A stretch of DNA of 64,000 nucleotides from Oculina patagonica (GCF_052425735.1 NC_135765.1:6262001-6326000); one strand, 5' to 3'; counted from the stretch's first letter, positions 5,224-47,837 are shown. The notes: generated by a model from the sequence alone, not told the origin. A program made the numbers and translations.

Positions 5224-5582
5224 TTAAAGGGACTGTGTCAGAGATTTAAGCCAAATTTAGGCGAAAAATTAATCGCTTAAAACAGTAAAGGAACATTTCA
5301 AAAACACAGCAAATACAAAAGAAGGTACAGATAACCAAAAGTTGAGAAGATTGAAACGGATTGCGATACTGTTCAGCGGAACAGTATTTCAAAGTTAATC
5401 TCGTTTGCTTGTAACTTTAAATTGTAACGCCAGGGAGACACGTTTGGTTGTAGTGAAGCTATGGTTTTTCTATTTTGATCCACAGAAGTAATTTCTTTGT
5501 AAACATTAAGTTTTATAGCGAGTATTTGGCAAAACTTAATAAAAAATACTGGTCTCATGATCAGCCGTGACACAGTCCCTTT
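5224..5582. mobile_element. Kolobok-like MITE directly 3' of G1
   Basis: ttaaAGGGACTGTGTCA...TGACACAGTCCCTtt terminal inverted repeat; TTAA intact on the left only. Confidence 0.65.
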
Positions 5583-5624
5583 CACACAATTTTTACTTCA
5601 TAAGTTTTTTTGCTCAGTTCAACG

Positions 5625-8600
5625 TTACATGTTCTTCATCTCTTCGTCCAAGCCAATCTTCATACCAATGGACAATGGCAGCTCTGACTTGATGTCTTCC
5701 CACAGTTCCTTGAGGGCTTTAACCGTGTTGATCTCCTTTTTGCGCAGGTCTTCCAACACAGCTTTCTTTCTTCCTTGGTCAGTCCAGTTGTACTTCTTCT
5801 GAACACGAGCGAAGAATTGCTCCACACTCTCCCCACCACTGGAAACTCCTGGGGAAAGATTGAAAAATAAGAGAGCGCTGTTAATAGCTGCGCATGCACA
5901 AGATCTTTGAGTTGTTCCAAAATATGATAAAATACGATGAGAGTTACAGAAGTCTATTGATCAACAACAAACAACAACAAAAAGCTTTATTTAACTCTAT
6001 AATTTTACAATGTTTTTCACCTCCCAAAATTAGTGTAGCTATTTGAGGCGGGACAGTTGAAAACAAACAGGCTGGTAGAAAATGCAGAAAGGACAGGCCT
6101 TCGGGCAAATGTCGGGAAGTGCAAAGTCTTGAGAGTCAATGCAAAGAATAATGAAGCCATCACAGTGAATGGTCTGGCGTTGGAAGGTGTAGAGAAGTTT
6201 ATTTATCTAGGAGCCACAGTATGTAGGCAAGGGGGCGGAGAAGAAGACATCAAGGCTAGGCTAGGGAAAGCGAGGGGAGCGTTTGTGAAGCTAAATCGAT
6301 TATGGAATTCCAGCAGTGTGTCGAGGAAGACGAAGATCAGGCTATACAAAACATTGGTCAAACCAGTTCTCATGTATGGTTGCGAAACATGGAAAATGAA
6401 CGAAGGTGATGCTAAGAAAAATTAAATCGATATGTTTCAGAACCGATGCCTGAGGAGGATAATGAAGATTAAATGGCAAGATAAGATCAGTAATAGAGAG
6501 GTACTGGAAAGGGCTAACGTGGAGAGGTTGAGTGAAGAGGTAAGAAGAAGGAGATGGCGATTTATTGGACACATCCTCAGACAACAACCTGACAATGACT
6601 GTGTTACAGCCCTGACATGGACCCCAGAGGGAAAGAGAAAGAGAGGCAGGCCAAAAACAACCTGGCGGCGCACAGTAGAAAAGGAGAGGTCCAATGCAGG
6701 GTGGCAGTCCTGGAGAGAGGTGCGCACTGCAGCGCAAGACAGGAATCGATGGAGAGCACATGTGGAGGCCCTATGCGCCAACTTGGCGCCAGGGGACAGG
6801 TGAAGGTGAGGTTTGAGGCGGGAGGTGAAAGAGAAAATGAAAACATTATATTTACACAATGACATTAAATAATCTACAATAAAGAAAAGAAAAGAATTAT
6901 AGTAATATTAACGATGATAATAATACTATTAATAATAACACTAATGATAAAAATAAAAATAATTTAAGATAAAGATTTCAGGTAGTCAGTGAGGGAATTA
7001 ATTTCAACATACTCGTCCTCAGCTAAAAGTAAATCAAACATTGTTTGGAATTGTTTTTCGGAAAATTGTCTCAGGTTTGTCTCTTAAGGCCGATGCGATA
7101 TTGTTCCAGAGTAAAGTTCTGAAACGAGAAAAAGAACGCTTTGAAATTTCCAGCTTTGCATCTCACCGGCTGATAGTAATCCCCATTTGCTGCAGATCTA
7201 ATATGTATCGGTGAACTTCGTTAGATTTTATAAAGCGAACTCGAAGAGGTAATGGTGCAGATCCATGAGATATGTCGTGCGTTAAGTTTGCGATGGTTTC
7301 AAAATAAATCATGGTTACGTGTAAAATTTAGAATTGATGATTTAACGAAAAATGGAATGTTATGACATGCCCATTTCTAAGGGTAAAACATATGAGAAGA
7401 AGTACACGTTTTTGGAGGATTAGGAGCTTGTTGATAAGACATTTGGAAGCGTGACCTCATACACATATCCCATCGGTTAGGTAGGGTAAGATCAAGGAAC
7501 GATACATCGTTAGAAGTGTCTGTGTAGGGACAGGATGTCGCAGTCTGGCTATTGATGCCATGATTATAGCCAGTAAGAAGGCTAAAAAACGTTTACCGGT
7601 TAGCATTAGGACGCACTTAGCGAATCTGATCTGTTCTCTCATTGTCTGTTCACTGATCAGTGGAAGATGCGGACTCGGCACTGAAAGGCAAAATGATTTA
7701 TAATTTTTTGGCTCACCTCCAGTCGTGACCTCCCTTTCCATTTGATTCTTCTCTCGCTGCTTTTTAATTCGAATAAACCTTTCAGCGGAGAGCAAAACAG
7801 AATCCAGGATGTCAAGAGCGGTTCGATCAACTTCGAAGGATCGCTCGTCATCCACGTGTGTGTAATTTGCAATGAAGTAGGTTCTCTCGCTGGAACTACC
7901 AGTTGCCCAGGACGCCTGGTCAAAAGCTTCATCTTTATCCTCCTTTTCTTTCAGTCTGTCAAGATAAGTAATCACCGTCACAGGAGCATAACCTGTAAAG
8001 TGAAGGAACGGTTATAAGTCACAGGAGCATAAACTGTAATGCAAGGTAAAGATTATGAGGCACAGTAGCATAATCTGTAAAGTGAAATAAAAGGTTATAA
8101 GTCAGAGGAACAAACTCTGTTAAGTCAGTTAAAGGAAGGACGGGAAGGAGGAAAGGAGAGAGGGAGGGACAAGCGATTAAAATTAAAGTAAAGCGAGGGG
8201 GGGGAAACAAAGTAAAGAGGGGGGAGGGACAGGAGGTTAAATCTCCCTCCTCCCTACTTTTTGAATTAAAATTTCTCCCTCCTTCCAATTCTGTACCTCC
8301 CCCCTCAGTAAAGAACAGTAATGAGATTAAATTATCAAATACCCCTTCATGCAGATATGCAAAAAGTTGACGGTTTTAAAAGACCAGGTCTATAATAGAG
8401 TAAACCATGAAAATCAAGCGCCCCACCCCAGAACAAAATGTTCCAACGAGTTCCCCCTAGGAACTTCAACTTTGACATTAAAGCTAAAATTAATTTGAGC
8501 TAAAAGGTTGAATTTTTTTCTGGCCCATATTGCTATTACCATCTTGTCGAAAGTGCTCTCTGATCTTCTGGAGTGTGTCCTTGTACTTGCCATCCTTCAA

Positions 8601-11600
8601 ACGTGGATCGTTTGCCTTCACAACAAAAATCACAGCGTGTGCAAATTTAGAGAGCGCTGGAGCAGTGTTTGCCGCTGCGTTCGGCTCCTGATTTGCTCCT
8701 TGCTGATCATAATTTCGGACAATTTCTTCTCCAGGACGTATCCTTTAATAGAAACAAGAAAAAAATTACTTTTAGACCTGCCAACGGCCCTAAAGCAACC
8801 CCTTGTATAACTCAGAGCTACGATGTGTTATCCTACACTTGAGTGAAAATATATACTGTGAGATTAAGGCGTCATGCCCAGGAACAAAGCAAAAGGTCTC
8901 CAGTTGTGCCCGAGCTTAATGTTTTTGCGTGTGTTCGCTTTTACGAGAATGTCGAGAGAATGGGCTCTCGTAAAAGCGTGTTCGCTTTTACGAGAGCCCA
9001 TTTTCGTAAGCAATCAGCTCTAGTTACGACACAGGCAGCCCAAGCGATGGCTTCTTTAATATAAATTTGCAATGGTTGTTGTCGGTTCGACTCAAGCGAT
9101 CGAAAAATATGCTCAATAAATCGCTGAATTTGAGATCTTTCGTTCCTAAATTACTAACCTAAGGTTGACTCCGTGTTATTGTGAGATTTGATGGGGTTTT
9201 AGGACGATTAATTCCTTACTTGCCGCTGACGCCCCCTACTAATACTTTTTCTTAATGAAGCCATCGCTTGGGCTGCCTGTGGTTACGACCACTTTATCCA
9301 GTTCTCGAGGGGGGCGCTAACGAAAGCTTCGACTGTATACTCACTTGTTCGGCTTTAGTCGTGAAAAGGGCTGTCTGTATATTCCCGGGGTATCTTATCG
9401 AACGTTCGGCAATCGAACACCAATCGTTCAATTGGGTTTCGTAATCGAACATACACCTGTAATCGAACTCACACTAAAATTTGGTGAATCGAACACAATC
9501 GAACGTTCGATTACTGACCGGTCGACAGTTCTACTCAATCCAAGGTTCAATTACCGAGCGTTTTGGCGCCAAGAGATAAATTCTTAACAAAATCGAATCA
9601 CAAACAGCTCTTGTACTCAATCCAAAGTTCAATTTCTGAACTTTCTGGAGCCAAGGGATAAATTCCAAACAAAATCGAATCGGATTACAATAATCAAACT
9701 CACAGCAAATTAGATGTTCGATTGAATTTGGTTCGATTTTGTTCGAATAGATACCCCGAACAGATTAGTCCCTAAAATTAAATAAAGATGAACTCACTCC
9801 AAAATTGTCTGCAAGTGTGGAATGTACCCGCGCAAGAAAAATCAGTTCGAGACACCACGAGAATCATTACCGAGCTACGTTATTAATAAATACTTTTTCA
9901 GGTCGACTTTCCTTTCAGACATGCAAAAAAGAGACCTCACTCAAGCGAAACGTCTGTTTTCCTTACGCTAGCCTGAACAACACACACAACATGCATTACC
10001 TTCCTGACAAAATTTTGAGGCACTCATCCAGGAGCCTTTCGTCACTCTCAAAAAATCCTCTGGTGTCCACCATCCGAATTTTTTTCTGCACGTAGTATTC
10101 CTCAAGGTTAATGGTGCCTTCCTTTCCTGTTCCTTGCGCAAAGGCGACCTGAGACTCTCCAATAGCTCGCTGTAACGTGCCTTGTTGTAAAGGTAATCAA
10201 AAAGAGAATGCCTTAATGTTGGGCGATTTTCGATTGGGTGTAGTTCCACTCCCAGGGTGGGGGCGGGGTTCCTTTTTCCTTTTGTTCACCCCAAAAAATT
10301 CCCTTGTGTTCCACTGTTCCCTAAAAGTACTTTGTCGATTTTTGTAATCCCTGATTCCTAAAATTAAATATCAGAAACACGGCTTTTGTTCCAGTGTTCC
10401 CAGCTTTATTTACCTTTTGTCGACTTGTTACCAATTATTTTATGGTCATGTTCCCTTGTTCCCTGTAAACCCTGGGGGGGGGGGGGGGGCTCAGTAATCA
10501 CTCGCCAATCACTGGACGCGAGCAAGCCAGTGCACCAGTCAAAACTCGATACAAACACATGTAGCCAACACCTCTCGTACCCAGATCTTCTTAACCCTTG
10601 GGAGAGAATATCTGGTAAAAAGCCATTTTTGCTCATGTCAAATGTGTCAGAAATTTGTTCATACGACAAGACTACGCATGCTCGTTAATTTAGAAGAATT
10701 TTTAAAAAGCTCAATGGTCGTTTTAAATAGTTCACGGAAAAGTTTTCACAAAAGAAGAAACCTGTTCTTACCCACAAAACTGGTTTTCCCTGATCCTGTT
10801 GGCCCGATCAACGCAATACGCAACAAATCGATGTCGTCCACCTCCAGATCTCGGAAAGATTCTTTCTTAATTCTAGGACAGCTCTGAAAGTCGTAATTCA
10901 TCAGGTCGCCCTTAAGTTGGAGAAATCTTTCTTCCTCCTTCTGTTTTCTTTCTCTTTCCTCCCTCTCACGTTTTTGGCGGTCTAATTCCCTTCTCTGTTC
11001 GTCGTCTTCAACCCTCGTGCGTTCTGCCACTTCACGCAACGCCTGTTGACGATCTCTTTCCATCTCGTCACGCAACGCTCTCATTCTCTGTTCATTTTCT
11101 TCTCGGGCTCTCTGTTCACCTTGAGCGCGTGCATTGGGATCGGTTCTGTCCACTTCTTCATAGGTCTTTAATTAAAGACAAGAACATTATGCCAACAATC
11201 AAATAAACGAAGGGATCGTGCTTAAAATGATTTCAAGGATTTGGAAACTGTTCCATTTAGTAAGCCAAGGGACCGGTCATTATTTAGAGGGTGGGTAAAG
11301 AAAAGGTAAAGTCTGTGTCAGAGCCAAGTGGCCCATACAGCCGGAGCTTATCCCGGTTTCCGTAGCATTAAGCGACTAGGAGTATTTCTACTCCCCCCTG
11401 GATGGGATGCTAGTCCATCGCAGGGTAACCCCCCAGCAGTAAATTCGCCGGTACCCATTTGTACACCTGGGTGGAGAGAAGCACTGTGAGAGTAAAGTGT
11501 CTTGCCCAAGAACACAACGCAGCGCCCCGGCCAGGCCTCGAACCCGGGCCGTTCGACTCGGAGTCGAGCGCGCTAACCATTAGGCTACCGCGCCTCTCAC

Positions 11601-13423
11601 AGAGGGTGGGTAGGACTGGTCCAAATTAGGGAAAGGTCAATGACTTTTATGTAGGAAAAAAGGGGGTGGGGCACATGAATTTGTACACGCATATTAGGAC
11701 GGTTTAAAGAAGTGGGTGGGTAAGGGGGGGATCAGTGAAAAATGTGCTTTACAAAAAAGAAGGGTCAGGAGAATTTGAACATAGGCTCCCTTCATTCGCA
11801 CCAGCGCCCCCCCCCCCCCGCCCTCACCTACCCACAGACTATGATTAGCCCCAATCCGATTAATACGACAAGGAAGCTAGAGTGGAAAATGTATAAAAAC
11901 TTTAAAAGTTTGGACTGAGTAATGTAGTAACCTTAAATGAACTGTAATCTAACTGGTAATCTTAATGTATGTTATGGACTGCTCAAACAATGACAAAAAA
12001 CAAAAGCCAAGAACAGGCCAAGTATGGGCCCCTGTGTTTACTTAAGATACAGATACCCCCCTCCCCCCCTCCGCCCAAGATATCAACCTATTCAGACTAT
12101 CCCCTTCCCCCAAGAAAAAATAACAAAATAAAACAAAAAAAATTAATTAAGCTAAAAAAGAGGACTTACCGTTTAGAAACACTAGCGACAATTACGACCC
12201 TCCAACAGCAAAATAGTTACCCATTGCATACCTTACCCCCCCCCCACCCCGCAAGTAGAGGATGGAATAATCGCGAAAGACTTTTAAAACTAGCTCAGTT
12301 CAGAAAATTGATGAGTTTTTAGGCAGTCTTGGAGAATTTATTTCCTTTCCAAGGATAAATACGCTAGCAATTGCAATGTATGGAAATGTAAAAACAGTTC
12401 CATTAGTGCAAACTGGTAACCAGAAACTGAAAGAGTACTCGAGCGATTTACTTCAAAATGAAACTGAATACTAAGCATTTTAAAACGAGGTTGGTATGGC
12501 TTGACAACAACCCATTAAAAAAGTAAGAAACATTCACTGAATCGAAATCTATAGCATTGCTTTTTTGTCAAACCTTTCTTATTTCTTGTGCCCGTATTTC
12601 AGTTAACACTTTTTTTAATAACAAAACTGGCAATATCGCTCTGTAAGCGCGCATCGCGTGACTTTCATTTACGTTTGATCGATGATTCGGGAGAATATTT
12701 AGCAAGAGGTATTAAAATGTTTCTGTTATTATTAATACCAGCAAGCTGTAAATTAACAAATAACTTACGAATACACTCTTTTGAAAGTCAAAAAATACAC
12801 GCTAGAGTTCAAAATAAATCAATTACAATCGCAAGTGATCGAATAAAAGCAGTAAATGTGTTAACATATTCCAGGAATTCATTACGAACTCACGTTACCC
12901 GGAAAGCCAAACAAGAGGAAAACTTTCGGTTTCATTTACCGTTTCCATTAATGTCGCCCTGTTTCTCTTATTCTTCCGTATGTAAAAGGAGATAAAAGGG
13001 ATTTGAATAACTGATTGTGTTTCTTGAGGTCGAAAATGTTAGCACAATTGACTCCTGCTTGACATAGTGATAAAATGCGAGACTGCTACCGACGTTAACC
13101 AAATTATTTGACTTTTTTTTAATAAAAAGCTCTCGTTTCGCTTTGCATTCCAGAATTTGGCTATTTGACCGATGAAGTACCTTAATTAGGCCCTTTAGAT
13201 CTAAATTTTAGTGAATAAACCGGCAAAGCAAAGTCTGAATTTCACCAGTTAAATTATAACACTTCTTTGACATGTTTCACTTTCAAGCGAAGACTCGAAT
13301 ACGCTTGCCATATTTAAACAAAATGTAACCGATTATAAGCTGAAATTAAAAAAAAAAATATTCGGATCTTTGTGTACTTACGATTTTTGGCGAACCGCCG
13401 AATATTTTTCTAAAAAAAGCCAT
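5625..13423 (-). CDS. G1: IFI44-family P-loop GTPase (no TLDc) with N-terminal coiled coil and C-terminal SAM-like domain, 439 aa
   Basis: Exons 13382-13423, 10772-11165, 10000-10180, 8540-8742, 7717-7992, 5625-5848; all GT-AG, 1320 nt open. Motifs: RIALIGPTGSGKTS (Walker A), KEGT, VDTRG, ILSGRIR, HAVIFV, VITYLD, FIANY, LDSVLLSAERFI, in the same order as IFI44 motifs (ILNGNIR, HCVAFV, LTHVD, VSNY, AADDFL, recalled). Confidence 0.88.
5962..7565 (-). mobile_element. 5'-truncated, decayed CR1/L2-like LINE in the last intron of G1
   Basis: Post-RT-like residues ARLRHPVPTQTLLTMYRSLILPYLTDGICV*...INKLLILQKR; 3' hairpin ttcacctccc/gggaggtgaa, minus-strand AATAAA at ~5986-5991 and a (TTG)n-like tail. 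Confidence 0.7.
6054..6811 (+). mobile_element. 5'-truncated RTE-clade LINE (RT C-terminus), frameshifted at ~6420
   Basis: VEKFIYLG, YKTLVKPVLMYGCETW, RRRWRFIGHILR, RGRPKTTWRRTV, AQDRNRWR motifs; AGGTGA repeat tail; 12-bp TSD TTTGAGGCGGGA at 6042-6053 and 6812-6823. Confidence 0.92.
11298..11600 (-). mobile_element. Full-length tRNA-derived SINE with TSD
   Basis: Minus-strand A box TAGCCTAATGG and B box GGTTCGAGGCC; 12-bp TSD AGAGGGTGGGTA at 11286-11297 and 11601-11612. Related pieces near 1370, 14178, 16030, 44410 and 51530. Confidence 0.88.
12645..12937. promoter_or_regulatory. Conserved intron-1 motif cluster of G1: GCATCGCGTGAC, GAS TTCCAGGAA (12869-12877), ISRE-like ACTTTCGGTTTC (12922-12933)
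   Basis: The same motifs are kept in G2 intron 1 despite indels and TE insertions around them. Confidence 0.6.
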
Positions 13424-13494
13424 TTTAGAAAAGGCTTTTTGTGTACGCCTGGAAACTTCTCGTCTGCTCTAACTTCTTGAAGCAGAATTCAAAA

Positions 13495-13543
13495 GCGGAA
13501 GTGGGTTTTCCCTGAAATCGCGTGACGTTTCTGATTCTCAGAA
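13495..13543 (-). promoter_or_regulatory. G1 proximal promoter: ETS GCGGAAGTG, kB site GGGTTTTCCC, CGTGACG, GAS TTCTCAGAA
   Basis: 70-120 nt upstream of the ATG; same order as in G2 with consensus-preserving substitutions. Confidence 0.65.
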
Positions 13544-14177
13544 ATAATCTCTGACCCAGGTCCCGTAGCCTGCGTCCAGCCGTCTCCTATTTCCCTCCTG
13601 GGGCGAGATCGCGCGAACGTCCACCTTGTTGCCGAAAACTATCATTTTCATTTCTTCTTCAGTGGACACCCAGTTTAAAAATAACATGACCCGCACTCAG
13701 TATTGGTAACGGCTTCTTGAGCCTAAGAGTTTTTATAAGCCAGGCAGCTGGAATATACAGAAATACAGAATCCACAAACGAATAATATACATAGTGTATT
13801 TGTAAGAGCAGCAATTCACCATCAGAGAATAGGGTTTGGGTACGTTTCAGCTTGGGCTTTTGTAGCCTATTTGTTATTCGTTTGTGAACCTGGAAATTGC
13901 TCTCCAAGACGCGTTGCAGGTTCTAATTCTATTTTGTTTGCGCATGCTAGCGAGGCTTGGAGGGCAATTTGCATGAACACAAAAGGATAACAAGTAGGCT
14001 GCAAAATGTCTATAGAGCATTTTCATTCACGTGACCTGCGGCCATATTGGTTTACTAAACCAAAAAAGAGAGTTTTATTCCCAGAGGAATAACAAGTACA
14101 CCAATATGGCCTTCGTTTCTTTGTTTTGGAACACCAACATATCAAAACGATCTATTACGGTGCATCCAATTTTTAAT

Positions 14178-14420
14178 GGAGAGGCATGGCGGCCTAATGG
14201 TTAGTGTGATGGACTCCGGATCGAGCGGTCCGGGTTTGAGCAATCGCCGGGGCACTGCGTTGTGTTCTTGAGCAGGATATTTTACTCACAAAGTGCCTCT
14301 GTCCACCCAGGTGTATAAATGGGTACCGGCGAATTTCCGTTACTGCTGGGGCTAACCTTGCGATGGACTAGCACCCCATCGAGGGGGAGTAGAAATACTA
14401 CTAGTCGCTTCATGCTACGT
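14178..14420 (+). mobile_element. tRNA-derived SINE, same family as 11298-11600
   Basis: tggcggcctaatggttag head and shared body. Confidence 0.8.
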
Positions 14421-15233
14421 CATATGTATAAATAAGCTTTTTTGCATATGTGAGCGAAGTGTAAAAACATAAACACTTTTCAATCAACTTAAACTTTTAT
14501 TTCTTTAAGAAATTCAAAATCGATGAGATGATCATAACCCTTACTTGTTTGCCTAGCTGAAAACGGCAAAAAGTTGTATTTCGTCATCCAAATGAGCTCC
14601 TGGTCCTGGTTTCGTTCTCCCTGTGAGTTTACCAGGCCTGAAATACGTTTTACTGCCGCAAAAAAAGTTAGCCCATTTTAACTGACTAACTTTTGTTTTG
14701 TTTTGGAACAGCAATATGGCAGCTGCGACGTCATATCAAAACGCTCTATTACGGTGCATCCAATTTTTGATGGGGAGGCAAAAAAAAGTTAGCCCATTTT
14801 AACTGACTGGTTTATAGTCAGTTTCTAGTGGAACATAATCAATCATCACCAGGTATACTCGGCCAATATTTTTGCTAACAACCTAAGAGATTTCGAGGTG
14901 GCTAAGTGGAATTGCCGCAGCACGGTTGATTTAGCTTTGTGGAGTCTTGAGACTAGTAAAGTTGTCACGTGACAAGAAGACCGTGTACGATCGAGTATGT
15001 TCTTGCCATGTGTGTGTTGTAACTCAGAGTTTGCACACTTTTTTATGCATTAAATACAACACAAGCTTAATCTTCTCAGAGTTGCGAGTTCGAATCTTCA
15101 CTTAACAGGGGTTATTCTAAATGGTTAGGGGGCCAAATAACCTCTCCCCGAATCAACATTTCTTAAAATGAATATTTTTACTTCACATGATTAGACAATT
15201 ATATCAAGTTTTTTTCTTTAGCTCGGTTCAACG

Positions 15234-18200
15234 TTACATGTTCTTCATCTCCTCTTCCAAGCCAATCTTCATGCCAATGGACAATGGCAGCTCTGACTTG
15301 ATGTCTTCCCACAGTTCCTTGAGGGCTTTAACCGTGTTGATCTCCTTTTTGCGCAGGTCTTCCAGCACAGCTTTCTTCCTTCCCTGGTCGGTCCAGTTGT
15401 ACTTCTTCTGAACACGAGCGAAGAATTGCGCCACACTTTCCCCGCCACTGGAAACTCCTGGGGAAAGATTGAAAAATAAGAGAGCAATGTTAATATCTGC
15501 GCATGCACAAGATCTTCTCGTTGATCCAAAATATGCATAGTATATGACGAGAGGTTTAGATGTCTATTAATCGTTACATAATTGGCATTAAGGTACAATC
15601 GGCGAATGTGATTGGTTCTCTCATTGCATGTCCACTAATAGAAGGCGATCGCGCGCTAGTAGCCTTTGAACAGAATGTAAATGTAAAAAAGTAAATGTTG
15701 TTTATAGTGGTCATGCACTTAGCTTTATATCTCTTCGAGATAGCTAGTTTACAGGCATGCCACTGAAACAGAGGAATGAACATAACAAGGTTAAAAATCC
15801 CAACTGGCAGGAGGCAGACCAGTTGGCTATGTACAAAGCGTGATCGAGGATTTGAACTCGGGACAACCGAGAAACAAATTCAGCTAGTGGCAGGGGCAGG
15901 TCTTGAACCGGGGACCTCCGGATTACAATACCAGCGCCCTAAACCATTCGACGTCATCATTTTCTTCTCTACTTCGCAGTGGGTTTCCATTTGAAGAGCA
16001 TTGTTCCATTATTCTGGATTCTTTGACCTTAGGTGGAGAGAAAGGGCACTATGAGAGTAAAGTGTTTCTGTCCAAGAGCACAACGCAGTGCCCCGGCGAG
16101 AGTTCGAACCCAGACCGCTCGATCCAGAGTCCAGCGCACTAACCATCAAGCCACCGCGCCTCCAATGTTGACAGTTGAATACGTAAAAAATGGCCTAGAG
16201 ACTCTCTCCCTTAGTTATGGCATTGAATTTGGGAAAAAGATTACCTCCAGCCATGGCCTCCCTTTCCATCTGATTCTTCTCTCGTTGCTTTTTAATTCGT
16301 ATAAACCTTTCAGCGGAGAGCAAAACAGAATCCAGGATGTCAAGAGCGGTTCGATCCACTTCAAAGGACTGGTCAGCATCCACGTGTGTGTAATTTGCAA
16401 TGAAGTAGGTTCTCTCGCTGGAGCTACCAGTTGCCCAGGACGCCTGATCAAAAGCTTCATCTTTATCTTCTTTGTCTTTCAGCCTGTCAAGATAAGTAAT
16501 CACCGTCACAGGAGCATAACCTGCAAAGTAAGGGAAAGATTATCAGTCACAGGGGCAAAAATTGTATTGTTATATAGCTAGAAATTTTTCCTTAGCAGCT
16601 CGCGCTAATTGGTTAATTCGAGGTCACATGAAATCTAACAATAGATGCTGTTTCCCGCCAAAAGTCTCCGAGAGGGCAACATTGCAAAATATGTGAAAAC
16701 AGAGGGCACATTGCAATTAATGTTGCCCGCGAATGTTAACCTTCGAGCGCCATTTTTTAAAGTCTTCGTCGTGCTATATAACAAAGCACTTAATGACTGA
16801 AAACCAGTTGATTTTGTTTTCCTCGAAACATTGAGATTTTCGGGAAATAAAATTAACTGTTTTTCCGAGGAATCAGTCATTAAAGGAAGGTAAAAAGAAA
16901 AAACGACCGACCGACTTAATGAACGAACAAAAGGAAGCAAGGACCGACCGACCGAACAAACGAACGATCACATGAACGACGGCGGAAATAAAAGAAAAGT
17001 AGGGAAGCCATGAAATGTAATTGAATGTAATAAGTGCGATCAAATACCCCTTCAGATATGCGATGGAGAGAAGGTTTTAACAAACCAGGACCTGGTTGTC
17101 AAAGCATAAAATTTGATTTCAGTTTTATTAAATTTTTAACGAAATTTTCTGTTTCTCTATATCTCCACAAAACATAAGCACTTTTATACAAGAGAAATTG
17201 AACCCTCGATGAACTTTTAATCTTGGGTTAGCGTTAATCTGCCCCAGGGCCGGGTTGTTCGAAGGGCGATTAACGCTAACCCAGGATTAAAAGATGATCA
17301 AGGTTTTAATTTCTCTTGTTTTAAAAGTTTTCCATAGCTAATGTTTTGTGGCGTTTGAGTTTGGTCCACGTCAAAACTGGGGGATTAAATATATTAACAG
17401 AAAACCTTAACGAAATGTTATAAAATTGAAATCAAATATCACGCTAATCCTGGATTAGCTTAATCGTGCTTTGAACAACCGGGCCCAGGTCTATACAACA
17501 GGGTAAGTCTATATAATAGGGCAACAGCTTCAGTGAAAAACGGACGGCACATCACCCTGCCCAACTACAAACGTTTGAATCATTTTCATAGGGTCTTACA
17601 CCTTGACGTACATAAAAAAGGCCTTTTAATTTGAGCTAAAGGACTGGATTTTCTTGCACCTATTGCTATTACCATCTTGTCGAAAGTGCTCTCTGATCTT
17701 CTGGAGAGTGTCCTTGTACTTGCCATCCTTCAAACGCGGATCGTTTGCCTTCACAACAAAAATCACAGCGTGTGCGTATTTAGAGAGCTCTTGAGCTCTT
17801 TTAGCCGCGGTGTTCGGCTCTCGATTTGCTCCTTGCTGGTCATAATTTCGCACGATTTCTTCTCCAGGACGAATCCTTAAAGAGAAACAAGAAAAAAATA
17901 ACTTTTCAGAACTAAATACGCCCCTGACGACAGTCCTGAAGCAACCATTTGTGTCACCTATAACTGGAATGAATTCATATGTAATAGGAGGCTAGTGTCT
18001 TGCCGAAGACAGCGTTCGTACTCTTTTGAATTCCATGACTTTTCAAAGTTTTCCATGACCTAAATCTGACCATTTTTCCTGGAAATTTCTTAAAAAATTA
18101 TCTTGATTTCGGGTACGCTTTTACCCTTTTCGATCCTCACAAAAAATTTCATTTTCCATGATTTTCCATGACCCACACTTAAATTCCATGACTTTCCAGC

Positions 18201-21200
18201 CCTGGAAAAATGAAATTCTAAAATTCCATGACTTTCCAGGTTTTCCATGACCCGTACAAACCCTGAAAGAACGAAACAAAAGGACCCTAGTTGTGAAATG
18301 CTCGGTTTCATTAGCATATACTTGTAGAGCCCTAACACGGCTCATAATACCGAGGGTAAATAAAGTTTCAGTTTTAGTGTCACAGCAAAGACCGTTGTCA
18401 GGGGCTTAACGCAAGCCTTTTTTGTAGATGGTCTTAGTAAGTATTCGTATTTGTCTTAGTGTTATTTTTGTTATGATTATTTCTTAGGTAACTTAAACAC
18501 GACCACATCAGCTATGCTGTAAATTTATCGTGTCTAAATAAAAGATATATTATTATATTATTATTAATCGTCGTGTGTTCGTAGGAGATGTCCCGCACTT
18601 GACGAGACCATAGATCGCCTGTGTAGGAGACTAGCTGAACGCGTGATTTCACGATACAATTACAAGCTGCTTGTACCTCAAACCTTAGTAAAACAGGCTC
18701 AGCTTTACTTGCGACAAAGGGAGATCTGAGATTTGAGCCGAAAAATTAATACTACTGTGGTTTGTGTCTGTGTGTTCCCTTTGATTGGTCGATTAAGAAC
18801 TGTCACGCGCATGACACAGAGAAACGCCTGTTTTCGTTGCGCTGACCTAAACAACGCACAAAACATCAATTACCTTCCTGACATGATTTTGAGGCACTCA
18901 TCCAGGAGCCTTTCGTCACTCTCAAAAAATCCTCTGGTGTCCACCATTCGAATTTTTTTCTGCACGTAGTATTCCTCAAGGTGAATGGTACCTTCCTTTC
19001 CTGTGCCTTGCTCAAAGGCGTTCTGAGGTTCTCCAATAGCTCGCTGTAATGTGCCTTGTAAAGGTAATACAAAACAAGAAGGTCTTAATGCTGGGTGGAA
19101 AAAGTGAAAGTGGGAACCAAAGCAAACACAAATTTCTTTCGACACTTAAGTGAAAATCGCTCTAATGATTAACACTTTGGCTAATCACAAAATAACGCAA
19201 TAAAGCCGTCAGAGGTCGAAGCAAAGTACAGTCATGCAACCGGTGCAAAGTGCGGGAAAACGTGCATAAGCCAAGTCACTTAATGTTAAATTGGTTTGGT
19301 ATAGGAGCACCTTGCACTTCGAAAACCGTTGTAACACGTCTGTTTGTATGCATCTACGATTTTGAGCGCCATACTATAGGTATAGGTATTTTATTTAAAG
19401 TCGGAAACGTTGGGAGTGGTTGCCCAATCTCCCGAGCCAGGGGCTCATGTTAAAAACGCACGACTATTTACAATAAAATTAATTACATTACTATTACATT
19501 ATAATCATTAAAAATAGAATTTAAAAAGAGATGCTAATATAAATATAGAATTAAAATATGAAAGCAACTAATCCTAATATTAAAAATTTAAAAGTTTAAG
19601 TTTGCACAAGAAGCATAGCATACTCCAAATAAAAAAACTATACAGGCTTCGAAAACCTGATAACAATCGAAAAACTCCTCTGAGACAGACCTGGGGGAAC
19701 CTTGCTTTACACCAGAGATTTAATAGAAACGTCACTAGCACAGATAGATATCGACCAGGTTTTTTCTTCCCCCACCCCCTCTCACCTAAAACTTCCTCCG
19801 ACTTAACCATCCAAAATACCCCCCTCCCTCTCCTCCCACACCAACCCTGAAATCCGCCAAGTTACGTTAACACATTTCTTTGTAGCTGGGACACGAAATA
19901 TACATGGAAAACCATACGCATTTTTATTACCTTGGGCTTGTCAATTTCACGGGTAATACCCTTACGAAGGAGGAATAAACCTGCCATGCGAATGTTTTAA
20001 TAGGTACCGAGGAAAAAAGGGATATTAGCCTGAGGCACAATGAGAGCACGAGAAATTTTAATCACAAAACACAGAAACCTGTTCTTACCCACAAAACTGG
20101 TTTTCCCTGATCCTGTAGGCCCGATTAGCGCAATACGTAGCAAATCAATGTCGTCCACCTCTAAATCTCGAAAAGATTCTTTCTTAATTCTGGGACAACT
20201 CTGAAAGTCGTAATTCATCAGGTCGCCCTTAAGTTGAAGGAATCGTTCTTCTTCCTTTTGTTTTCTTTCTCTTTCCTCCCTCTCACGTTTTTGACGGTCT
20301 AATTTTCTTCTCTGTTCGTCGTCTTCACTTCTGGTGCGTTCTGCCACTTCACGCAACGCCTGTTGACGATCTCTTTCCATCGCGTCACGCAACTCTCTCA
20401 TTCGCTGGTCATTCTCCTCTCGGGCTCTCTGTTCACCTTGAGCGCGTGCATTGCGATCTGTTCTGTCCACCGTTTCATAGTTCTGTAATTAAAGACAGAC
20501 AAACAAGCAAAACCAAGGGATCGTGTTTGAAACAAATTTCAGAGGATTTGGAAACAATTTTATTTAGAAAACGAATCCGAATAAAAGAGAAGGAAGCTAG
20601 AGTAGAAAATATAGATACACCTTGACATTGTAGCTAGCTAGGTAATAATTTTAATTTAGTGATTTACTCGAAAACGGAACTTTATACTAAGCTTTTAAAA
20701 AATGAGGCTGGCATGACTTCACAACAAACCGATTAAATGAAAAACATTTTTCTCAATTTTTTGAATACAGTCAACTCTCTCTTAACGGACACCTCTATAA
20801 GAAGGACACCTCCATAAGACGGACACCTGGTGATGGTCCCTGCCGTTTTTCAGTCATTTTACTGTAACCAAACTCCCTATAAGACCGACGGACACCTCTC
20901 TAAGGCGGACAACGGACACTTTGAAATGATTAACGGACACTTGAGAAGTGTTTTTTTATCATGTTTTATTAGTGAAAATACTTCCAAACTTCTCAACGTT
21001 AGTCACTGTACCAAGGATACGTGTATACCAAGCTTACTAACCACAAACAATGACGCTTTAACGGATTACTTCTTTACTTACGTATATGGACACTAAAGAG
21101 GTCATTCTCTACTTACAGTATTACAGTTTGTAGAAGCTCTCAACTTTTGCTTTAAAAAGTAAATACGGTCCTTTTATTATTTTAGTCTTGTTGCAGTTAG

Positions 21201-22974
21201 CAAAGGTTTGTTGCATTGTGCAAAGGTTTAGCTTTATTATCTCAGAATTACTGGTGTCATGTGACCTCGACTCTCTATTAGGCGGACACCTCTCTAAGAC
21301 GGACAGCTGCGGCCGGTCCCGAAGGTGTCCGTCTTAGAGAGAGTTGACTGTATTCAAACCCTCATGAAATCCCACACGCACAGAAAACGTCACTGGAATC
21401 GAATTCAGTGACATAACCTATTTTGTCACAGTCTTTCTATTTCCTGTACCCATTTTTCAGTAATGACAATTTTATGAACTAAAACTGGCAACATCGATCA
21501 CTGAGCGCGCATCGCGTGACTTTCATTTACGCTTGCGTGACTGAAGAGTAAGGAAAATATAAACTATAAAGAGCTACTAAAATATTGGAGTTATTATTAA
21601 TGCCAGAAAACGGTAAATCAATAAAGAGTAAATTTTGTATTTAACACCAAAAAAAAAACACGTCAGCGCTCAAAATAAATTAATTACAAATTCTTGGTTT
21701 TCATGTTACGTCATAAAATTCTGAAATCAAAATTCACTAGGCCTACTACATTTTCGTTGTTATTAGACGTATAAAGACAAGCTAAAAATATATCTTTTTG
21801 CAAATTTCCAGATCGATAGTGTCATTCGTTTTTTAAACAGAGCATTTTGAATATTTGAGTTCTCCGTCGTATGTGACATCAAGCTTGTTTAAAAAAAAGG
21901 CCTTTCCTTTCCATTTTCAGCAGATTGAACATTTCAGATACAATAAATGGTGTTTATGTGAAACTGTACTAGCTCATGAGCCAAAGATTGCCGCTGTTGT
22001 AAACAGAATTGAGTTCCAGATGGTTTCTCTGACATCACGGCGGCCATATTTGTGTACCTCGGAAGGACACAGTTATGGCATCTCCATACTAAGCTTTATA
22101 AATTTGCGTGGAAAGGTTCGGCAAATAACTCGCGAACGGTACACCGCACAGACCTGAAACTTGGAGAAATTGTTTATCTATTTATCGTCTATAATATTTG
22201 AAATTATAGCTTCAGTTCTATAGTTGAATGGTTTCGAATTTATTTTTTGATTGCGTGACAGTGAAATCCAGCAATTGCAAATGATCGAACAAGTTCCAGG
22301 AATTCGTTACAACCGGAAGACGCGTTACCCGGAAAAGCCAAGAAACCTAAAGAGGAAGACTTTCGGTTTCATTTACCTACTGCAGTACAAATGTCACGTT
22401 CTTTTCCTTTATTATTCCTTTAATTTATTTTATCTAGTGAAAGGGATTAAAAATACCGTGACTTTGCGTTTTATTGTCGAGGATGATTGCGAAATGTACT
22501 TTGTACAGTTCTAATGAAATAAGAAACTCTAAGGTCAACAACATCTTTTCGCTTGATGTAATATATTTCGGTCTCAGACGAAAGCTCTTGTATTCTCTAT
22601 TCATCCGAGAATTCGCCGATTTGCCCGCCGCTTTAAAACGCTTGTGTTTCTGTGACTGAGTGAATGAAACATATGCAGAAACGCACTTTGCATTATAAAA
22701 TTAATAGTTTCGATGTCAACTTGTAAAGCACGACACACTACATTTGTTATTGGTGCAAATTGCCGATATTCCTCTTAATTTTGCTTGGCTTTCTTGTGAA
22801 ATCATGTTCGACTTCGTGCATACGTTTAAAACACAAGTTTCACTTTCAAACGAAGCGAACACTCGTGCACGCTTGTTTGCAGTGTTTGGACAAAAAGAAA
22901 CCAAGAATAAGCTGGAATTTATATAATTATTCAAATTTTCGTGTACTCACGATTTTGGAATCGCCGTTTCCCAT
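15234..22974 (-). CDS. G2: IFI44-family GTPase with N-myristoylation-type start MGNGDSK, coiled coil and SAM-like C-terminus, 433 aa; close paralog of G1
   Basis: Exons 22951-22974, 20089-20482, 18874-19054, 17673-17875, 16245-16520, 15234-15457; exons 2-6 have the same lengths as in G1 (394/181/203/276/224); 1302 nt open. Confidence 0.9.
15740..15950 (-). mobile_element. Second tRNA-derived SINE family
   Basis: Minus-strand tRNA-like head (tggtttagggcgctggtattgtaatccggaggtccccggttcaag) followed by a non-tRNA body. Confidence 0.65.
16030..16165 (-). mobile_element. SINE 5' fragment (11298-11600 family)
   Basis: gtggagagaaagggcactatgagagtaaagtg...ctaaccatcaagccaccgcgcctcc matches the full copy. 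Confidence 0.75.
17245..17488. mobile_element. MITE with imperfect TIRs
   Basis: cagggccgggttgttcgaag...taacccaggatt versus aatcctggattagc...tttgaacaaccgggcccag. Confidence 0.65.
20768..21350. mobile_element. Tc1/mariner (pogo-like) MITE
   Basis: TIRs CAGTCAACTCTCTC...GAGAGAGTTGACTG, TA on both sides, internal repeated GGACACC; absent from the paralogous G1 intron. Confidence 0.85.
22294..22370. promoter_or_regulatory. G2 intron-1 motif cluster: GAS TTCCAGGAA (22294-22302), CCGGAA cores, ISRE-like ACTTTCGGTTTC (22359-22370)
   Basis: Same motifs and order as in G1 intron 1. Confidence 0.6.
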
Positions 22975-23077
22975 TTTAGAGAAGGTTTCCTTTGTAGTGT
23001 AGCTTTGTGTACGCTTCGAAGGTCCTTAAAACTCCTTGCCTGCTCTGTGGTGCTTCTTTGAAGCCGAATCCTCAAAA

Positions 23078-23125
23078 GCGGAAGTGGGACTTCCCCGAAA
23101 TCGCGTGACTTCTGATTTCCCAGAA
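23078..23125 (-). promoter_or_regulatory. G2 proximal promoter: ETS GCGGAAGTG, canonical kB GGGACTTCCC (23086-23095), CGTGAC, GAS TTCCCAGAA (23117-23125)
   Basis: 100-150 nt upstream of the ATG; matches to well-known consensus sites, conserved with G1. Confidence 0.68.
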
Positions 23126-24375
23126 ATGACATTCTCGGACCCAGATCCCGGAGCAGTGACTGCGCGAGCCAGTACGTTTCAAATTGCGTATTAACAGTGT
23201 GTTCTATATTAAATATCCTTTTTCTGAACCCAACTGAAGAGTTTATTCCGTCATAACTGAGTTATGTGATGGTGGGTGCTGTTTGCTAAATTCCCACCCG
23301 TTTTGGCCCGTGACAGAGTTTCCAGTCGGGGGAACAAGTGCCAGTTGATGGCGTGTTCAGGTTTTCGAAACCTGAAAGAGCCCGCAATCTTCGGAAATTG
23401 TTCAGTGGGTTGCTTAGTTACATGATCACGCTATCATTACGCAACCACACAGCTGTGGGGATGAAAACAATTTTTTTTTGGCGCTTTTCCGCGGGAGTTT
23501 TAAAACATTTTTTTTTTAAGATGTTTTGTTTAGTATAAGTTCAATGGAAAGTGGGATCTCAGTTACTTTTGGTTTGGCACCGATAACAGTCATAGACAAT
23601 TTTAAGTCCTTTCGGGAAGGCAAAAAAATTTCATCAAAAAAATTTCGCCGTCCATACGTTATCAAACAACCTTGGATGACCACAATTACCACCTGCAGGT
23701 GCTCAAAAAAGAACATCTTGGACGAAGGAAATTTTTAAGCCTGTGTTCTAACCAAGAGAGCCAAGAGAACTTCTCTTCGATCATACCCGCGTGGCAAAAG
23801 CGCCATTTTGAACACCAAAACCTCAAGTTTCTTCGGAGATATTCGTATAACACTCTCATTGGACGAAATCATTCGGAAAGCATTCGGGCGCGCACACGAA
23901 AATTTCCCAAAACCAGAACTTGTTCCCCCGACTGTTTCGGCAAATCTCTTTTTACAGCAGTTGAATGACTCCGTCGACAAGAATGAATAAAGCGCATTTT
24001 GCAATGCCGAGCGTTGTCTTGAGCACTAGCCCTGCCTTGTTGGAAGGTTCAAAACTAGCAACAGGCCCTTTACATGTTCCCTTGCTCGTCAAAAACCCCG
24101 CCTGATTATTTTGCAACATACATAACCATAAAATTATCCTGACCTTAATTGTACTGGCTCCATCAAATGAAACTTGTTTTGGTGCCCCGTGACATTTATA
24201 TTGTCTGTCATGTCACTAAACACATTCAATCAAATTGGGTTGGGGAGGGGAGGGGGGGGGGGGGGTAACGCAGCAAACGTCAAACGCCTAGCCGCGCAAT
24301 CAAATTCAGTATACAGCTGTTTCTAGAAAGGTTGTCGAAAAAAGGCACAAAAGTGCATGCGACAAGACCGAAAGG

Positions 24376-36915: not shown

Positions 36916-38071
36916 GTCACGCCACACTTGGACAAACGAGAGAGACGATTTTAGTCCTAGAAACGTCAGGAGAGTAAAAAATAATTATTTTAAAACCTGT
37001 ATGTAAATTTTAACTGTATAAGCTGTTCATTAGTTTATAAAAACAATGTTTCTTTTTTTGTTTGGGAATCGTTTAACATATGTCACTTTTTCATGTTTAC
37101 TTAGTCTGCATCGCGTGACGTCTACAGATTTACTTTCATGTGCGTGACTTATATGTAGGTTTTGCCAGATTTTCAAATCTTGCTTTTCAATAGCGTTGAA
37201 ACAAAAAATAGCTGATTAACACAACTTTGAAAAATACATTATTCTCGATAGCAGATCAATAGAGACATTAAAATTTAATAATTGCAACTTAGAAAGGCAA
37301 TTTCAACCCTGACAGTTCCGCAACTTCTAGGAATTTGCACAGCGACAGAAAAGTGTTTTCCGGAATCGTATCAAACTTATCAGTTATCAGTTGTTTGAGG
37401 GAGGATCTAATTTTCTTTCTGCTTTATATATTTTTCTCTCCGTCCCTCTGGTTTGCTATGAGAAGCACCTGGAAAGTCTCCTGAAAGTATATGAATTTAC
37501 GAAATAAAGGTCATGCGGAGGTTAATCATCATTTTAATAAAATGTTCGTATCTGTCTACGGCGTAATGGCTGTTTATTGTGCGCACTGTCGATTTAGTTT
37601 CAAATTTATTAAACTGTATTCCACACGCTTCCGTCCAGAATCAGATCATTTTGGGAAATTTAAAAGAATCGATGGCTTTTATATGGCAAACGGATACAGA
37701 AGGCGGAGGAAAGAATTTTAACAGCACTGCCCGCAGCACTGCTATCATAAAACAAATGTTATTTTATATGAGCATTAAAGTGTGCATTTAAGAAAATACA
37801 AATTGACGCCACAATTCCCTTTTGAGCGTTGCAATAACTTCATACTTCTGTCACTTACTAAAATTTAACGTTGTGTTAGTCTTTTTGTAAAAATTTCAGA
37901 TCGTCAATCGTTTCGTGACTCGGGGATTTAGCGGTACAAAAAACAAACAGTCTAGCAAATGCATATTTGCAACCAACATCAATAGATACGTTCCTGTGCA
38001 TGCTAAATTCGACAACTCAAGGCGATGCACGATCGCCATACAAGCTACCAAGTTAACAGGCAGGTACTCAC

Positions 38072-38095: not shown

Positions 38096-39234
38096 TGGAG
38101 AACAAATACGTCCTAGGCTGTTCAGTCTTCTGTTCGTGTTCCTCGCCGCCGTCGCTCGATTCCAGAAAAAGCCGGAAGTGCATGCAAGCGAGGCTTAATT
38201 AGAATTCAGCATGGCGTGACGACATCTTGGGTTGAACTGTTTGTACTCGGCAACAGCCGAATTTAAGAAATGTAAAGATAGAAAAATTAAACGTCAATAA
38301 GCTAAAAGTCGGACTGAAAACGCCGCCACAGAAACTAATCAAAACGGAAATGAAAACAAACTTCGCAGAGAAAATTTAAGGTGTGTAAAGAAACTCTTCT
38401 ATGGAGGCTAAAAATAAACTGAATATTCTTAGAATTCTTAGAAAGCCCATATCAACCGATGGAAAACAATGGGTTAATGCTTGATAGAACGTATATGGTT
38501 TCGGCTGGGGGCGGAAGGGGGGGAAGCTGGAAGCAATATTCCGAGAATGCGTAGAAGGGGAAACGAAGGCCGGGGGGCCGGGGATTTGAATTTGAACTTG
38601 GCACTTTTTAAAATGCACTTTTGCAATCAAATACTTTAATAAACAAGTGTCACGCAGCGTACGAAGATTTATTTCTTCGAATACTAAGCTGTCATCAACT
38701 TAATCAGGACCGGGGATCAGGAGGGAAGAGTACTGAAAAAAGCTGCATTTCTCCCCGCTCTCCCTCCCTCCGGCCTTTCGAATCGGTAAATCTTGTCAAG
38801 AGAAATGAAGGAATACGTATGTGTCAGATATTTATTTACGACTAAAGCCTACAATTAAAAAGAAACACAACGGTGGCTTATGTCTTGATTGTAGCTTTAG
38901 TTCAAAGTGAAAACACGTCACGCTTATTCAATGAGTCAGATGTCTCACACTTTAGTATTCATGCCGGTCAAAGACGGGAAGAAAGACACTTGTCAAGCAT
39001 GAAACGTGATTATGCTACTGTATTACTTATAAAAACACATTGACCTTTAGGAAGTTTTCACTTTTCTGACAGGGTGAAATAAGCATACAATCGTTACAAA
39101 TGAAAATGTACGGTGCACTGATAAGCAGTGAGAAAAGCCGTAAAACGAGGTTAGCTTTGTGCGAGAGCGTTTCACTTGGGTCACAGAAAAGTGTCCGTTG
39201 TTGGCATAAACTGGTGTTAACTGCGTTGTCCGTA

Positions 39235-47102: not shown

Positions 47103-47837
47103 GTTAGGCCACAGTTAGACAAACGCGATTCGACGATTTTAGTCCTTAAAAAGTAAAAAGTATCAAATCATTTTGGAAAACTGTATTAAAACATTCATTA
47201 TAATTATAAGCAGTTAATGCGAATCGTTTTTAAAACATACTTGTATGTCACTTTTCCATGTCTACTTAGTCAGCGCATTGCGTGACGTTTACAGATTATT
47301 GGATTATTTACAGCGCATTGCGTGACTTATATGTAATGTAACCAGACTGAGCCAGGTTTTCAAATCTTGCTTTTCAGTAGCGTTTAACTGATTAACTCTG
47401 CTTTGAAAAGATATTTTGTCCGATAATAGATCAATAAAACTATTAAAATTTAATAATATTGCAGATAGCAAAAAAAATCAATAGAGACAGATCCTCCAGT
47501 TCTAGGAATTCGTAAAGCAACAATATATTGTTTCGCGGAATCAGCTAAATCAAACTTTTTAGTTTAAGTTGAGTCGGATGTTTGAGGGAGAATCTATTTT
47601 TTTCTGCTTCATTTTTCTCTCCTTTCCTTTTGTTTGTTATGAGAAGCACCAAGAAGTCTCCTGAAAGTATATGAATTTACTGGATCAAGTTTATGCGGAG
47701 TAATATTCTAATCATTATGCGTTAGGTAAGAGACAGCTCTGCTATCACAAAATATTATTAATGACCCGGTTTTGAGCATTGAAGTCGAAAGTACATTACA
47801 GATAATGCAATTTTACGCCGTAGTTCCCCTCTGAGCG

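Follow-up and report, generated by a model that had tools for sequence, protein, structure and literature searches.

We examined a 64,000-nucleotide stretch of the genome of the coral Oculina patagonica (GCF_052425735.1 NC_135765.1:6262001-6326000; hereafter, the window, with positions counted from its first letter), and in it the promoters and first introns of two tandem genes, G1 and G2, which encode GTPases resembling the interferon-induced protein IFI44. A preliminary description, made from the sequence alone, had proposed that both promoters carry ETS, kB (NF-kB-type), CGTGAC and gamma-activated sequence (GAS) motifs in the same order, that both first introns hold a GAS and an interferon-stimulated response element (ISRE), and that the genes are controlled like interferon-stimulated genes (ISGs) without interferon. 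All strings quoted there for the promoters, and both those quoted for the introns, were found at their positions. The observation is confirmed, and it is stronger than that description held.

Comparison of the window with itself revealed four tandem minus-strand paralogues with common GTPase exons, namely G1, G2, G3 and a gene at 49560-53931; one of the five genes that had been listed earlier belongs to another GTPase subfamily. The models of G1 and G2 were built by hand and are as follows.

5625-13423, minus strand: gene G1, with coding exons 13423-13382, 11165-10772, 10180-10000, 8742-8540, 7992-7717 and 5848-5625
15234-22974, minus strand: gene G2, with coding exons 22974-22951, 20482-20089, 19054-18874, 17875-17673, 16520-16245 and 15457-15234
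13382-13423, minus strand: coding part of G1 exon 1, 14 codons, GT donor at 13381-13380
22951-22974, minus strand: coding part of G2 exon 1, encoding MGNGDSKI, with the joint of 20482 to 22951 present in RNA

Both genes have six exons with AG/GT at all junctions. G1 forms a clean open reading frame (ORF) of 439 amino acids, and the hand-built G2 protein (433 amino acids) is identical to the annotated ACROYT_G027428. The protein comprises a short exon 1, a charged coiled coil, a P-loop G domain (GPTGSGKT) and a small C-terminal domain. Pfam MMR_HSR1 matched the G-domain protein marginally (23.9 bits against a cut-off of 21.9), and Septin matched the orthologue of the sea anemone Nematostella with 33.4 bits; Pfam searches with single G1 exons gave nothing above cut-off. 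Vertebrate IFI44 has an N-terminal TLDc domain. No Pfam match to TLDc was found in the coral protein, the N-terminus of which is a myristoylation-type MG start and a charged coiled coil. Because TLDc is absent, and because the name "interferon-induced protein 44-like" is that given by NCBI to the Montipora orthologue (61% identical), the gene is, as judged by its sequence, IFI44-like in the G domain only, and the label of ISG homologue leans on the annotation of others. Where the start codon of G2 stands (MGNG..., myristoylation-type), G1 reads ATA (13382-13423 compared with 22951-22974), and an in-frame ATG 18 nt upstream of that ATA opens the protein MAFFRKIFGG..., so the N-terminal lipid anchor signal has probably been lost in G1.

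The two promoters share a composite of fixed spacing: GAS (TTCYNNGAA), 7-8 bp, GTCACGNG (GTCACG(C/T)G), 2 bp, a second GAS TTCNNNGAA overlapping GGGAA..CCC, and then ETS (ACTTCCG). Its parts are located as follows.

13495-13543, minus strand: proximal promoter module of G1; read along the gene strand, distal GAS TTCTGAGAA, GTCACGCGAT, proximal GAS TTCAGGGAA overlapping the kB-like GGGAAAACCC, and ETS CCACTTCCGC
23078-23125, minus strand: G2 proximal promoter module; order and spacing of G1, except that the spacer between the distal GAS and GTCACG is 1 bp shorter
13495-13502 (G1) and 23078-23085 (G2): ETS GCGGAAGT
13503-13512: G1 kB, GGGTTTTCCC
23086-23095: G2 kB, GGGAAGTCCC on the gene strand, plus-strand letters GGGACTTCCC
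13508-13516 (G1, TTCCCTGAA) and 23091-23099 (G2, TTCCCCGAA): second, proximal GAS overlapping kB, overlooked in the preliminary description
13517-13526 (G1) and 23100-23109 (G2): CGTGAC within the 10-mer ATCGCGTGAC common to both genes
13535-13543 (G1, TTCTCAGAA) and 23117-23125 (G2, TTCCCAGAA): distal GAS

The paired promoter GAS sites lie a constant 26-27 bp apart, and a third GAS is found in intron 1. The four-motif cluster occurs in the 64-kb window only at the promoters of G1 and G2, while ~0.01 clusters are expected by chance (Poisson, as for all chance-cluster expectations given here). Promoters of the G1/G2 type have no TATA box. Two RNA-like runs contain the joint of 20482 to 22951, flanked on the gene strand by GT..AG, which confirms intron 1 of G2. 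RNA contigs extend to 23036 and 23070, and the bin 23078-23191 has no RNA cover, though DNA runs cover it. Since RNA stops at 23070, the ETS site at 23078-23085 lies just upstream of the furthest RNA contig 5' end, at ~8-15 bp; a contig end is no proof of a start site. In DNA runs of related organisms, no difference fell within the G2 promoter module among the best-supported 40 of ~300 differences, from which no claim is drawn.

The first introns contain two further shared blocks, C and D, and a second ISRE-type site.

12869-12933, minus strand: G1 block C; on the gene strand, GAAACCGAAAGT (12922-12933), TTCCGGGTAAC (12894-12904) and GAS TTCCTGGAA (12869-12877)
22294-22370, minus strand: G2 block C; the same three elements as in G1, with GTAACGAATTCCTGGAA identical at 17/17 letters to the coral of the ENA assembly described below
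12869-12877 (G1) and 22294-22302 (G2): intron 1 GAS, TTCCAGGAA
12922-12933 (G1) and 22359-22370 (G2): intron 1 ISRE-like site, ACTTTCGGTTTC
12894-12904 and 22324-22334: conserved intron 1 element GTTACCCGGAA, overlooked previously
13273-13284, minus strand: G1 second ISRE-type site, gene-strand letters GAAAGTGAAAC, at ~+221 relative to the ETS anchor, likewise overlooked
22836-22847, minus strand: G2 second ISRE-type site, GAAAGTGAAACT, a full match to GAAANNGAAACT
12623-12673, minus strand: G1 block D around GAAAGTCACGCGATGCGCGC, with ATCGCGTGAC at 12653-12662; 51 bp, 90% identical to G2
21481-21541, minus strand: G2 block D, with ATCGCGTGAC at 21511-21520 and another CGTGAC at 21536-21541

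Every ISRE is thus intronic. The form GAAANNGAAA(C/G)T is matched by GAAACCGAAAGT in both genes and by GAAAGTGAAACT in G2; the second site of G1 reads GAAAGTGAAACA. The second copy of ATCGCGTGAC, present in intron 1 of both genes, had also been missed. An ISRE and a GAS within 80 bp of each other were seen three times, compared with 2.3 expected, which is not unusual alone; therefore, the claim for the intron rests on conservation. DNA depth over blocks C and D is that of a single copy and RNA cover is zero, so they are not exons in these runs. In G1, GAAAGTCACGCGATGCGCGC of block D lies ~200 bp beyond the intron GAS, and in G2 a high-copy repeat of ~600 bp lies between blocks C and D. This gap is accounted for by the repeat at 21596-22279, which, like 20684-21367 in the same intron, has in each of the four runs a depth ranging from thousands to about a million, indicating high-copy repeats. 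Copies of a short interspersed repeat (77-83% alike, in both orientations) sit at 1377-1576, 11354-11598, 14179-14419 and 16032-16162; they occupy intron 1 of G1, the DNA separating G1 from G2, and an intron of G2.

If G1 and G2 were young duplicates, or had been homogenised by gene conversion, then their similarity would be passive and the shared motifs would be uninformative. Their exons are indeed 91-96% identical and differ by only 0.125 at 4-fold degenerate sites. Intron 1 and the upstream DNA, however, align only as short islands, outside which they are unalignable: 78 of 82 motif bases are identical between G1 and G2, compared with ~44% over the whole aligned promoter and intron 1, and in 20,000 random placements the figure of 78 matching bases was never reached. 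Motif positions are thus far better conserved than the flanking intron, the comparison on which the earlier claim had been made to depend. The combination of similar exons and hardly alignable introns suggests either exon-centred gene conversion or very fast intron turnover. Because choosing motifs by their being shared is circular, 26 other motif families served as a control. Among them, positional conservation was limited to one match to a MEF2-like site and two to TNGCGTG, the CGTGAC element itself; for the GAS, ISRE, kB and ETS families, seven of nine matches were positionally conserved.

A genome-wide search of the 529-Mb assembly for the ETS-kB core returned two further promoters, GA and GB, ~85-100 kb away on the same contig. 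GA belongs to a full paralogue (66% protein identity; 4-fold divergence from G2 of 0.37), and its register is exact: GAS at -37, GTCACGC at -21, GAS at -11 and ETS at +4. GB keeps GGGAAGACCC and ETS, and has a GAS at -101. No IFI44-like GTPase exon was found within 14 kb downstream of GB, which may be an orphaned first exon. The GB promoter copy (GGGAAGACCCACTTCCGG, C8:6425926) is accompanied by an exon-1-like ORF, MGNKNTTRKS, and a GT donor.

A further search of the genome bears on whether the promoter block comes from a repeat, that is, from a transposon family ending in GTCACGCAATTTCAGGCAA that would have carried the motifs as incidental cargo. A degenerate 19-mer matched the genome 35 times, compared with 9 for its control, and many of these matches fell in one repeat family. 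However, the likeness stops after 19 bp, exact matches to the full module are confined to G1, G2 and GA, and the promoter and intron blocks are single-copy in DNA runs, unlike the true repeats of G2 intron 1. The module is, moreover, orthologous in other genera. We consider a repeat origin highly improbable. The repeat family, which is found on several contigs, begins ..AAAGGGGCTATGTCACGCAATTTCAGGCAATTTCGGCACTGACC and resembles part of the promoter module over its first 19 letters.

Other coral genera were then compared. Three genes of Pocillopora verrucosa have 75% protein identity and a 4-fold divergence from G2 of 0.52 (Jukes-Cantor, 0.88). Their promoters carry GGTCACGTAATTTCGGGGAAATCACACTTCCGCTTTTG, and all three keep the proximal GAS and ETS. 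Their intron 1 contains CGAAAGT (+599 to +605), TTCTGGGTAAC (+628 to +634), TTCTTGGAA (+658 to +665) and GAAAGTCACGC (+832 to +862), the counterparts of which lie at +577, +601, +628 and +843 in G1. The ENA assembly ERZ25073805 (L064) has a 4-fold divergence from G2 of 0.55. The nearest named match of its exon-2 protein is Montipora (72%), and from this likeness the organism is probably a Complexa coral. Its promoter reads TTCTTGGAA, 7 bp, GTCACGTG, 2 bp, TTCGGGGAAATCCCATTTCCGCTTTT, which is the spacing of Oculina G2, and its intron 1 contains GAAACCGAAAG, GTAACGAATTCCTGGAA and two GTCACGCGAT words. Four extra copies of a GTCACGCC-TTCGGGG-ACTTCCGC module, ~95 bp apart, lie upstream of its working promoter (~5380-5700).

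Block C has the same order in Pocillopora, where it is about as far from the promoter, and in the ENA coral, where it lies ~350 bp further downstream; the intron order of ISRE-like site, GAS (TTCYTGGAA) and GTCACGC is common to the three genera. Of the ISRE-like site, Oculina and the ENA coral share GAAACCGAAAG; in Pocillopora only AAAGCGAAAGT remains. The proximal GAS palindrome TTCNNNGAA is kept in seven of eight promoters from three genera, and the intron GAS in all three genera. Within both GAS sites of the promoter, most substitutions affect the three free positions in the middle (AGG, GGG, GCG; TGA, TGG, TTG). ACTTCCG is likewise present in 7/8 promoters, the ENA coral having ATTTCCG. 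The kB site is intact in G1 (GGG-N4-CCC type), G2, GB and the ENA coral, and has lost a half-site in GA and the three Pocillopora genes.

The footprinting across species that had been suggested as a check thus recovered the blocks and their spacing, with the promoter register exact to the letter, in the ENA coral and the three genes of Pocillopora. Since neutral DNA is unalignable at this divergence, the promoter and intron blocks are, as judged from these alignments, under purifying selection. Although neutral divergence is saturated, the islands are present in GA, in Pocillopora and in the ENA coral, and passive similarity, the caveat attached to the original claim, counts as refuted: with flanks that are largely unalignable and the same blocks found at 4-fold divergences of 0.52-0.55, there is next to no chance that it explains them.

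Nematostella provided an independent test, since the motif set was fixed before this genome was inspected. The orthologue (P0116) is 44% identical over 98% of the query and its first exon encodes MGNKQTKI; its promoter is not alignable to the coral promoters. The 210 bp before the ATG contain CGTGAC, a consensus kB site GGGGCTTCCC, a GAS TTCTACGAA and GGGAAAGTTCCC, and no ETS site. This cluster of kB, GAS and CGTGAC is the sole one in the 22-kb locus, where ~0.06 are expected. A second IFI44-like gene is arranged head to head with the orthologue; the kB/GAS cluster falls in the 735-bp stretch between the two, which may thus serve as a promoter in both directions.

We conclude with high confidence that the blocks are real cis-regulatory elements. 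As to what they do, we favour, at somewhat better than even confidence, a TATA-less proximal promoter and an enhancer-like module in intron 1 of a subfamily of N-myristoylated, coiled-coil, IFI44-like GTPases, which would be read by STAT, IRF, ETS and NF-kB factors and be inducible. In this process, an ETS-family factor would set the start site and the basal or immune-cell activity. A single STAT5-like STAT would occupy the paired GAS sites, IRFs would occupy the ISRE-like sites, and a p50-like NF-kB homodimer could sit on GGG..CCC in those copies that have both half-sites. Together, these factors would render the gene inducible upon sensing of nucleic acids or cyclic dinucleotides, without interferon.

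The individual assignments differ in strength. The STAT reading is plausible and is the one best supported internally: three sites have stayed palindromic, two of them as a promoter pair at constant spacing. No element varies less than ETS, which probably determines where transcription starts. The claim that the motifs are NF-kB, STAT and IRF sites is plausible for the GAS palindromes and, by their letters, for the ISREs, which are good candidate matches, yet intronic and partly kept; it is weakest for kB, where two promoters, those of G2 (GGGACTTCCC) and the ENA coral (GGGAAATCCC), match the consensus GGGRNWYYCC, and G1 and GB fit only GGG-N4-CCC.

The presence of the corresponding factors, taken for granted before, was borne out in part. 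The Oculina genome contains a Rel homology domain (RHD) gene on contig C4 and 6-7 IRF domains. STAT_bind gave no genome match at the default threshold; at relaxed thresholds STAT_alpha and STAT_bind gave three weak, collinear exon matches on contig C7, and a STAT gene is probably present. Published induction data concern homologues. In Nematostella, 2'3'-cGAMP (cyclic GMP-AMP) raises many ISG homologues (PMC8713801), and a transcript annotated "IFI44, Septin" is a top marker of the immune cluster activated by polyinosinic:polycytidylic acid (poly(I:C)), with a log2 fold change of 4.5 (PMC13319465). A Stylophora member of the same orthogroup rises with cGAMP (log2 fold change 1.3; PMC13319465 supplement), and activated cells raise IRF2, STAT5A, ELF1, ELK1 and FOS (PMC13319465). 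Of the proposed ISG-like control without interferon, then, the footprints are real and homologues respond in Nematostella and Stylophora (PMC13319465), and the identity of the factors is a prediction from motif letters.

Several observations count against the reading by STAT, IRF, ETS and NF-kB. GGAA/TTCC cores are common to ETS, STAT, NF-kB, NFAT and IRF, and sequence cannot assign the factor. The kB site, which overlaps the proximal GAS, has lost a half-site in four of eight promoters, making an NF-kB role the least probable: GA reads CGGAAGACCC, and all three Pocillopora genes read GGGAAATCAC, one letter off. The distal GAS is intact in one of the three Pocillopora genes and broken in two. 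The ISRE at +221 is kept in G1 and G2 only and not in Pocillopora, and the ISRE blocks are absent from the GA intron. Neither GAS nor kB is present in the promoter of the sister genes G3 and G4. In Nematostella, cGAMP induction of the assayed genes was not reduced when each IRF or STAT was knocked down singly, and NF-kB was required only for an antibacterial subset (PMC8713801). Finally, the transcript annotated "IFI44, Septin" (XM_001637235) is presumably that of the orthologue XP_001637285 (P0116), a match made by accession offset and a common Septin Pfam label, not by sequence.

These points leave room for real conserved elements with other readers, which we consider possible, though rather unlikely: ETS factors on the GGAA cores, and bHLH-PAS (on XRE/HRE-like TNGCGTG/TACGTG) or CREB/ATF proteins on GTCACG(C/T)G. 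Expression would then be constitutive or specific to cell types instead of being induced through STAT, IRF and NF-kB. The most invariant letters are GGAA, CACTTCCGCTTTT and GTCACG, and kB and the distal GAS decay in some copies. GTCACG(C/T)G is conserved as well as any element and bears no immune label; we take it to resemble a word of the xenobiotic or hypoxia response element type (XRE/HRE, TNGCGTG) or a cAMP response element (CRE) half-site. ATCGCGTGAC occurs in promoter and intron, with related GTCACGCRATGC words in intron 1 of G3 and G4. The null effect of the Nematostella IRF and STAT knock-downs (PMC8713801) fits these readers, as does the enrichment of the IFI44 homologue already in unstimulated RLRb-high cells (PMC13319465). 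Conversely, the palindromic form of TTCNNNGAA persists across genera at one site in the intron and two in the promoter, most changes affecting the free middle letters; Oculina and the ENA coral have GAAACCGAAAG in common; and homologues are strongly induced by poly(I:C) or cGAMP. The word GTCACGC(G/A)AT(GC) was observed in the promoter and intron 1 of G1 and G2 (12653-12662, 13517-13526, 21511-21520, 23100-23109), in intron 1 of G3 and G4 (near 37108-37125 and 47313-47345), in Pocillopora and in the ENA coral.

The STAT, IRF, ETS and NF-kB reading can be carried further. The paired GAS, GTCACGCG, kB-like and ETS elements, together with the intronic ISRE-GAS, might be an ancestral code of the interferon-less antiviral response of Hexacorallia, working like an enhanceosome in which STAT, IRF and ETS (ELF/ELK) are jointly required. 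We put this forward tentatively and regard it as doubtful.

The neighbouring genes are organised differently at their 5' ends. G3 and G4 share another promoter, in which CGTCACGCCATGC is followed, after ~35 bp, by CACTTCCGGCTTT; their common sequence is GCCTCGCTTGCATGCACTTCCGGCTTTTTCTGGAATCG (38150-38225 and 48520-48600, minus strand). A HEPN-type gene of Desmophyllum pertusum (P0021, of the G3 type) keeps this promoter nearly letter for letter (~6285-6345). The 5' part of G5 differs and has MSP-like exons, and no promoter could be placed for this gene. Stylophora P0101 lacks the MG exon and begins differently at its 5' end. Of a second Desmophyllum gene, P0080, the contig opens within the gene and so excludes the promoter.

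In vertebrate ISG promoters, the ISRE is read by ISGF3 or IRFs and the GAS by STAT dimers, often with kB. The same motif types, TTCNNNGAA, GAAANNGAAA(C/G)T and GGG..CC, are clustered here in an ISG homologue, both at its start site and within intron 1, with the GAS paired. Unlike vertebrates, cnidarians have no known interferon, IFNAR or STAT1/2-IRF9 and possess a single STAT5-like STAT; the ISRE-type sites of the coral are intronic and not in the proximal promoter, its module includes ETS and GTCACGCG, and it is known from sequence alone. The resemblance to ETS-dependent TATA-less core promoters lies in ACTTCCG at <=~15 bp from the RNA contig 5' end and the lack of a TATA box; the coral differs in that ETS is fused at fixed spacing to GAS/kB-like sites and GTCACGCG. 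In shrimp (IRF-Vago; PMC4602278) and oyster (cGAS/STING-TBK1-IRF; PMC8218723), for which reporter or binding data are reported, an IRF-type factor is likewise proposed to work on ISRE-like DNA upstream of antiviral genes without vertebrate interferon; the coral case, by contrast, is sequence-based and concerns an effector gene, not a cytokine-like gene.

The closest precedent is the interferon-less programme of cnidarians, in which IFI44 homologues are among the common induced effectors and in which ISG control older than interferon has already been proposed (PMC8713801, PMC13319465). What differs here is that candidate elements are mapped and conserved. The main text of PMC13319465 contains no cis-element analysis ("motif" occurs 0 times), and that of PMC8713801 contains none either, the inspected uses of "motif" there referring to short hairpin RNA design and protein motifs. 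The motif types are known and the general idea is published; the claim is modest, and what is new is a well-mapped instance in an animal without interferon.

Cnidarians induce many ISG homologues while having no interferon, and single IRF and STAT knock-downs were null in Nematostella (PMC8713801). If the ancestral-code reading were true, the module would date back to the deepest split among stony corals, with a compositional echo in a sea anemone, and joint binding of STAT, IRF and ETS would explain those null results. The mapped promoter and intron module supplies oligonucleotides and reporters for the binding and cooperation of STAT, IRF, NF-kB and ETS. Oculina patagonica has long been studied for Vibrio-associated bleaching, so that this coral would profit from immune-responsive markers whose control elements are known.

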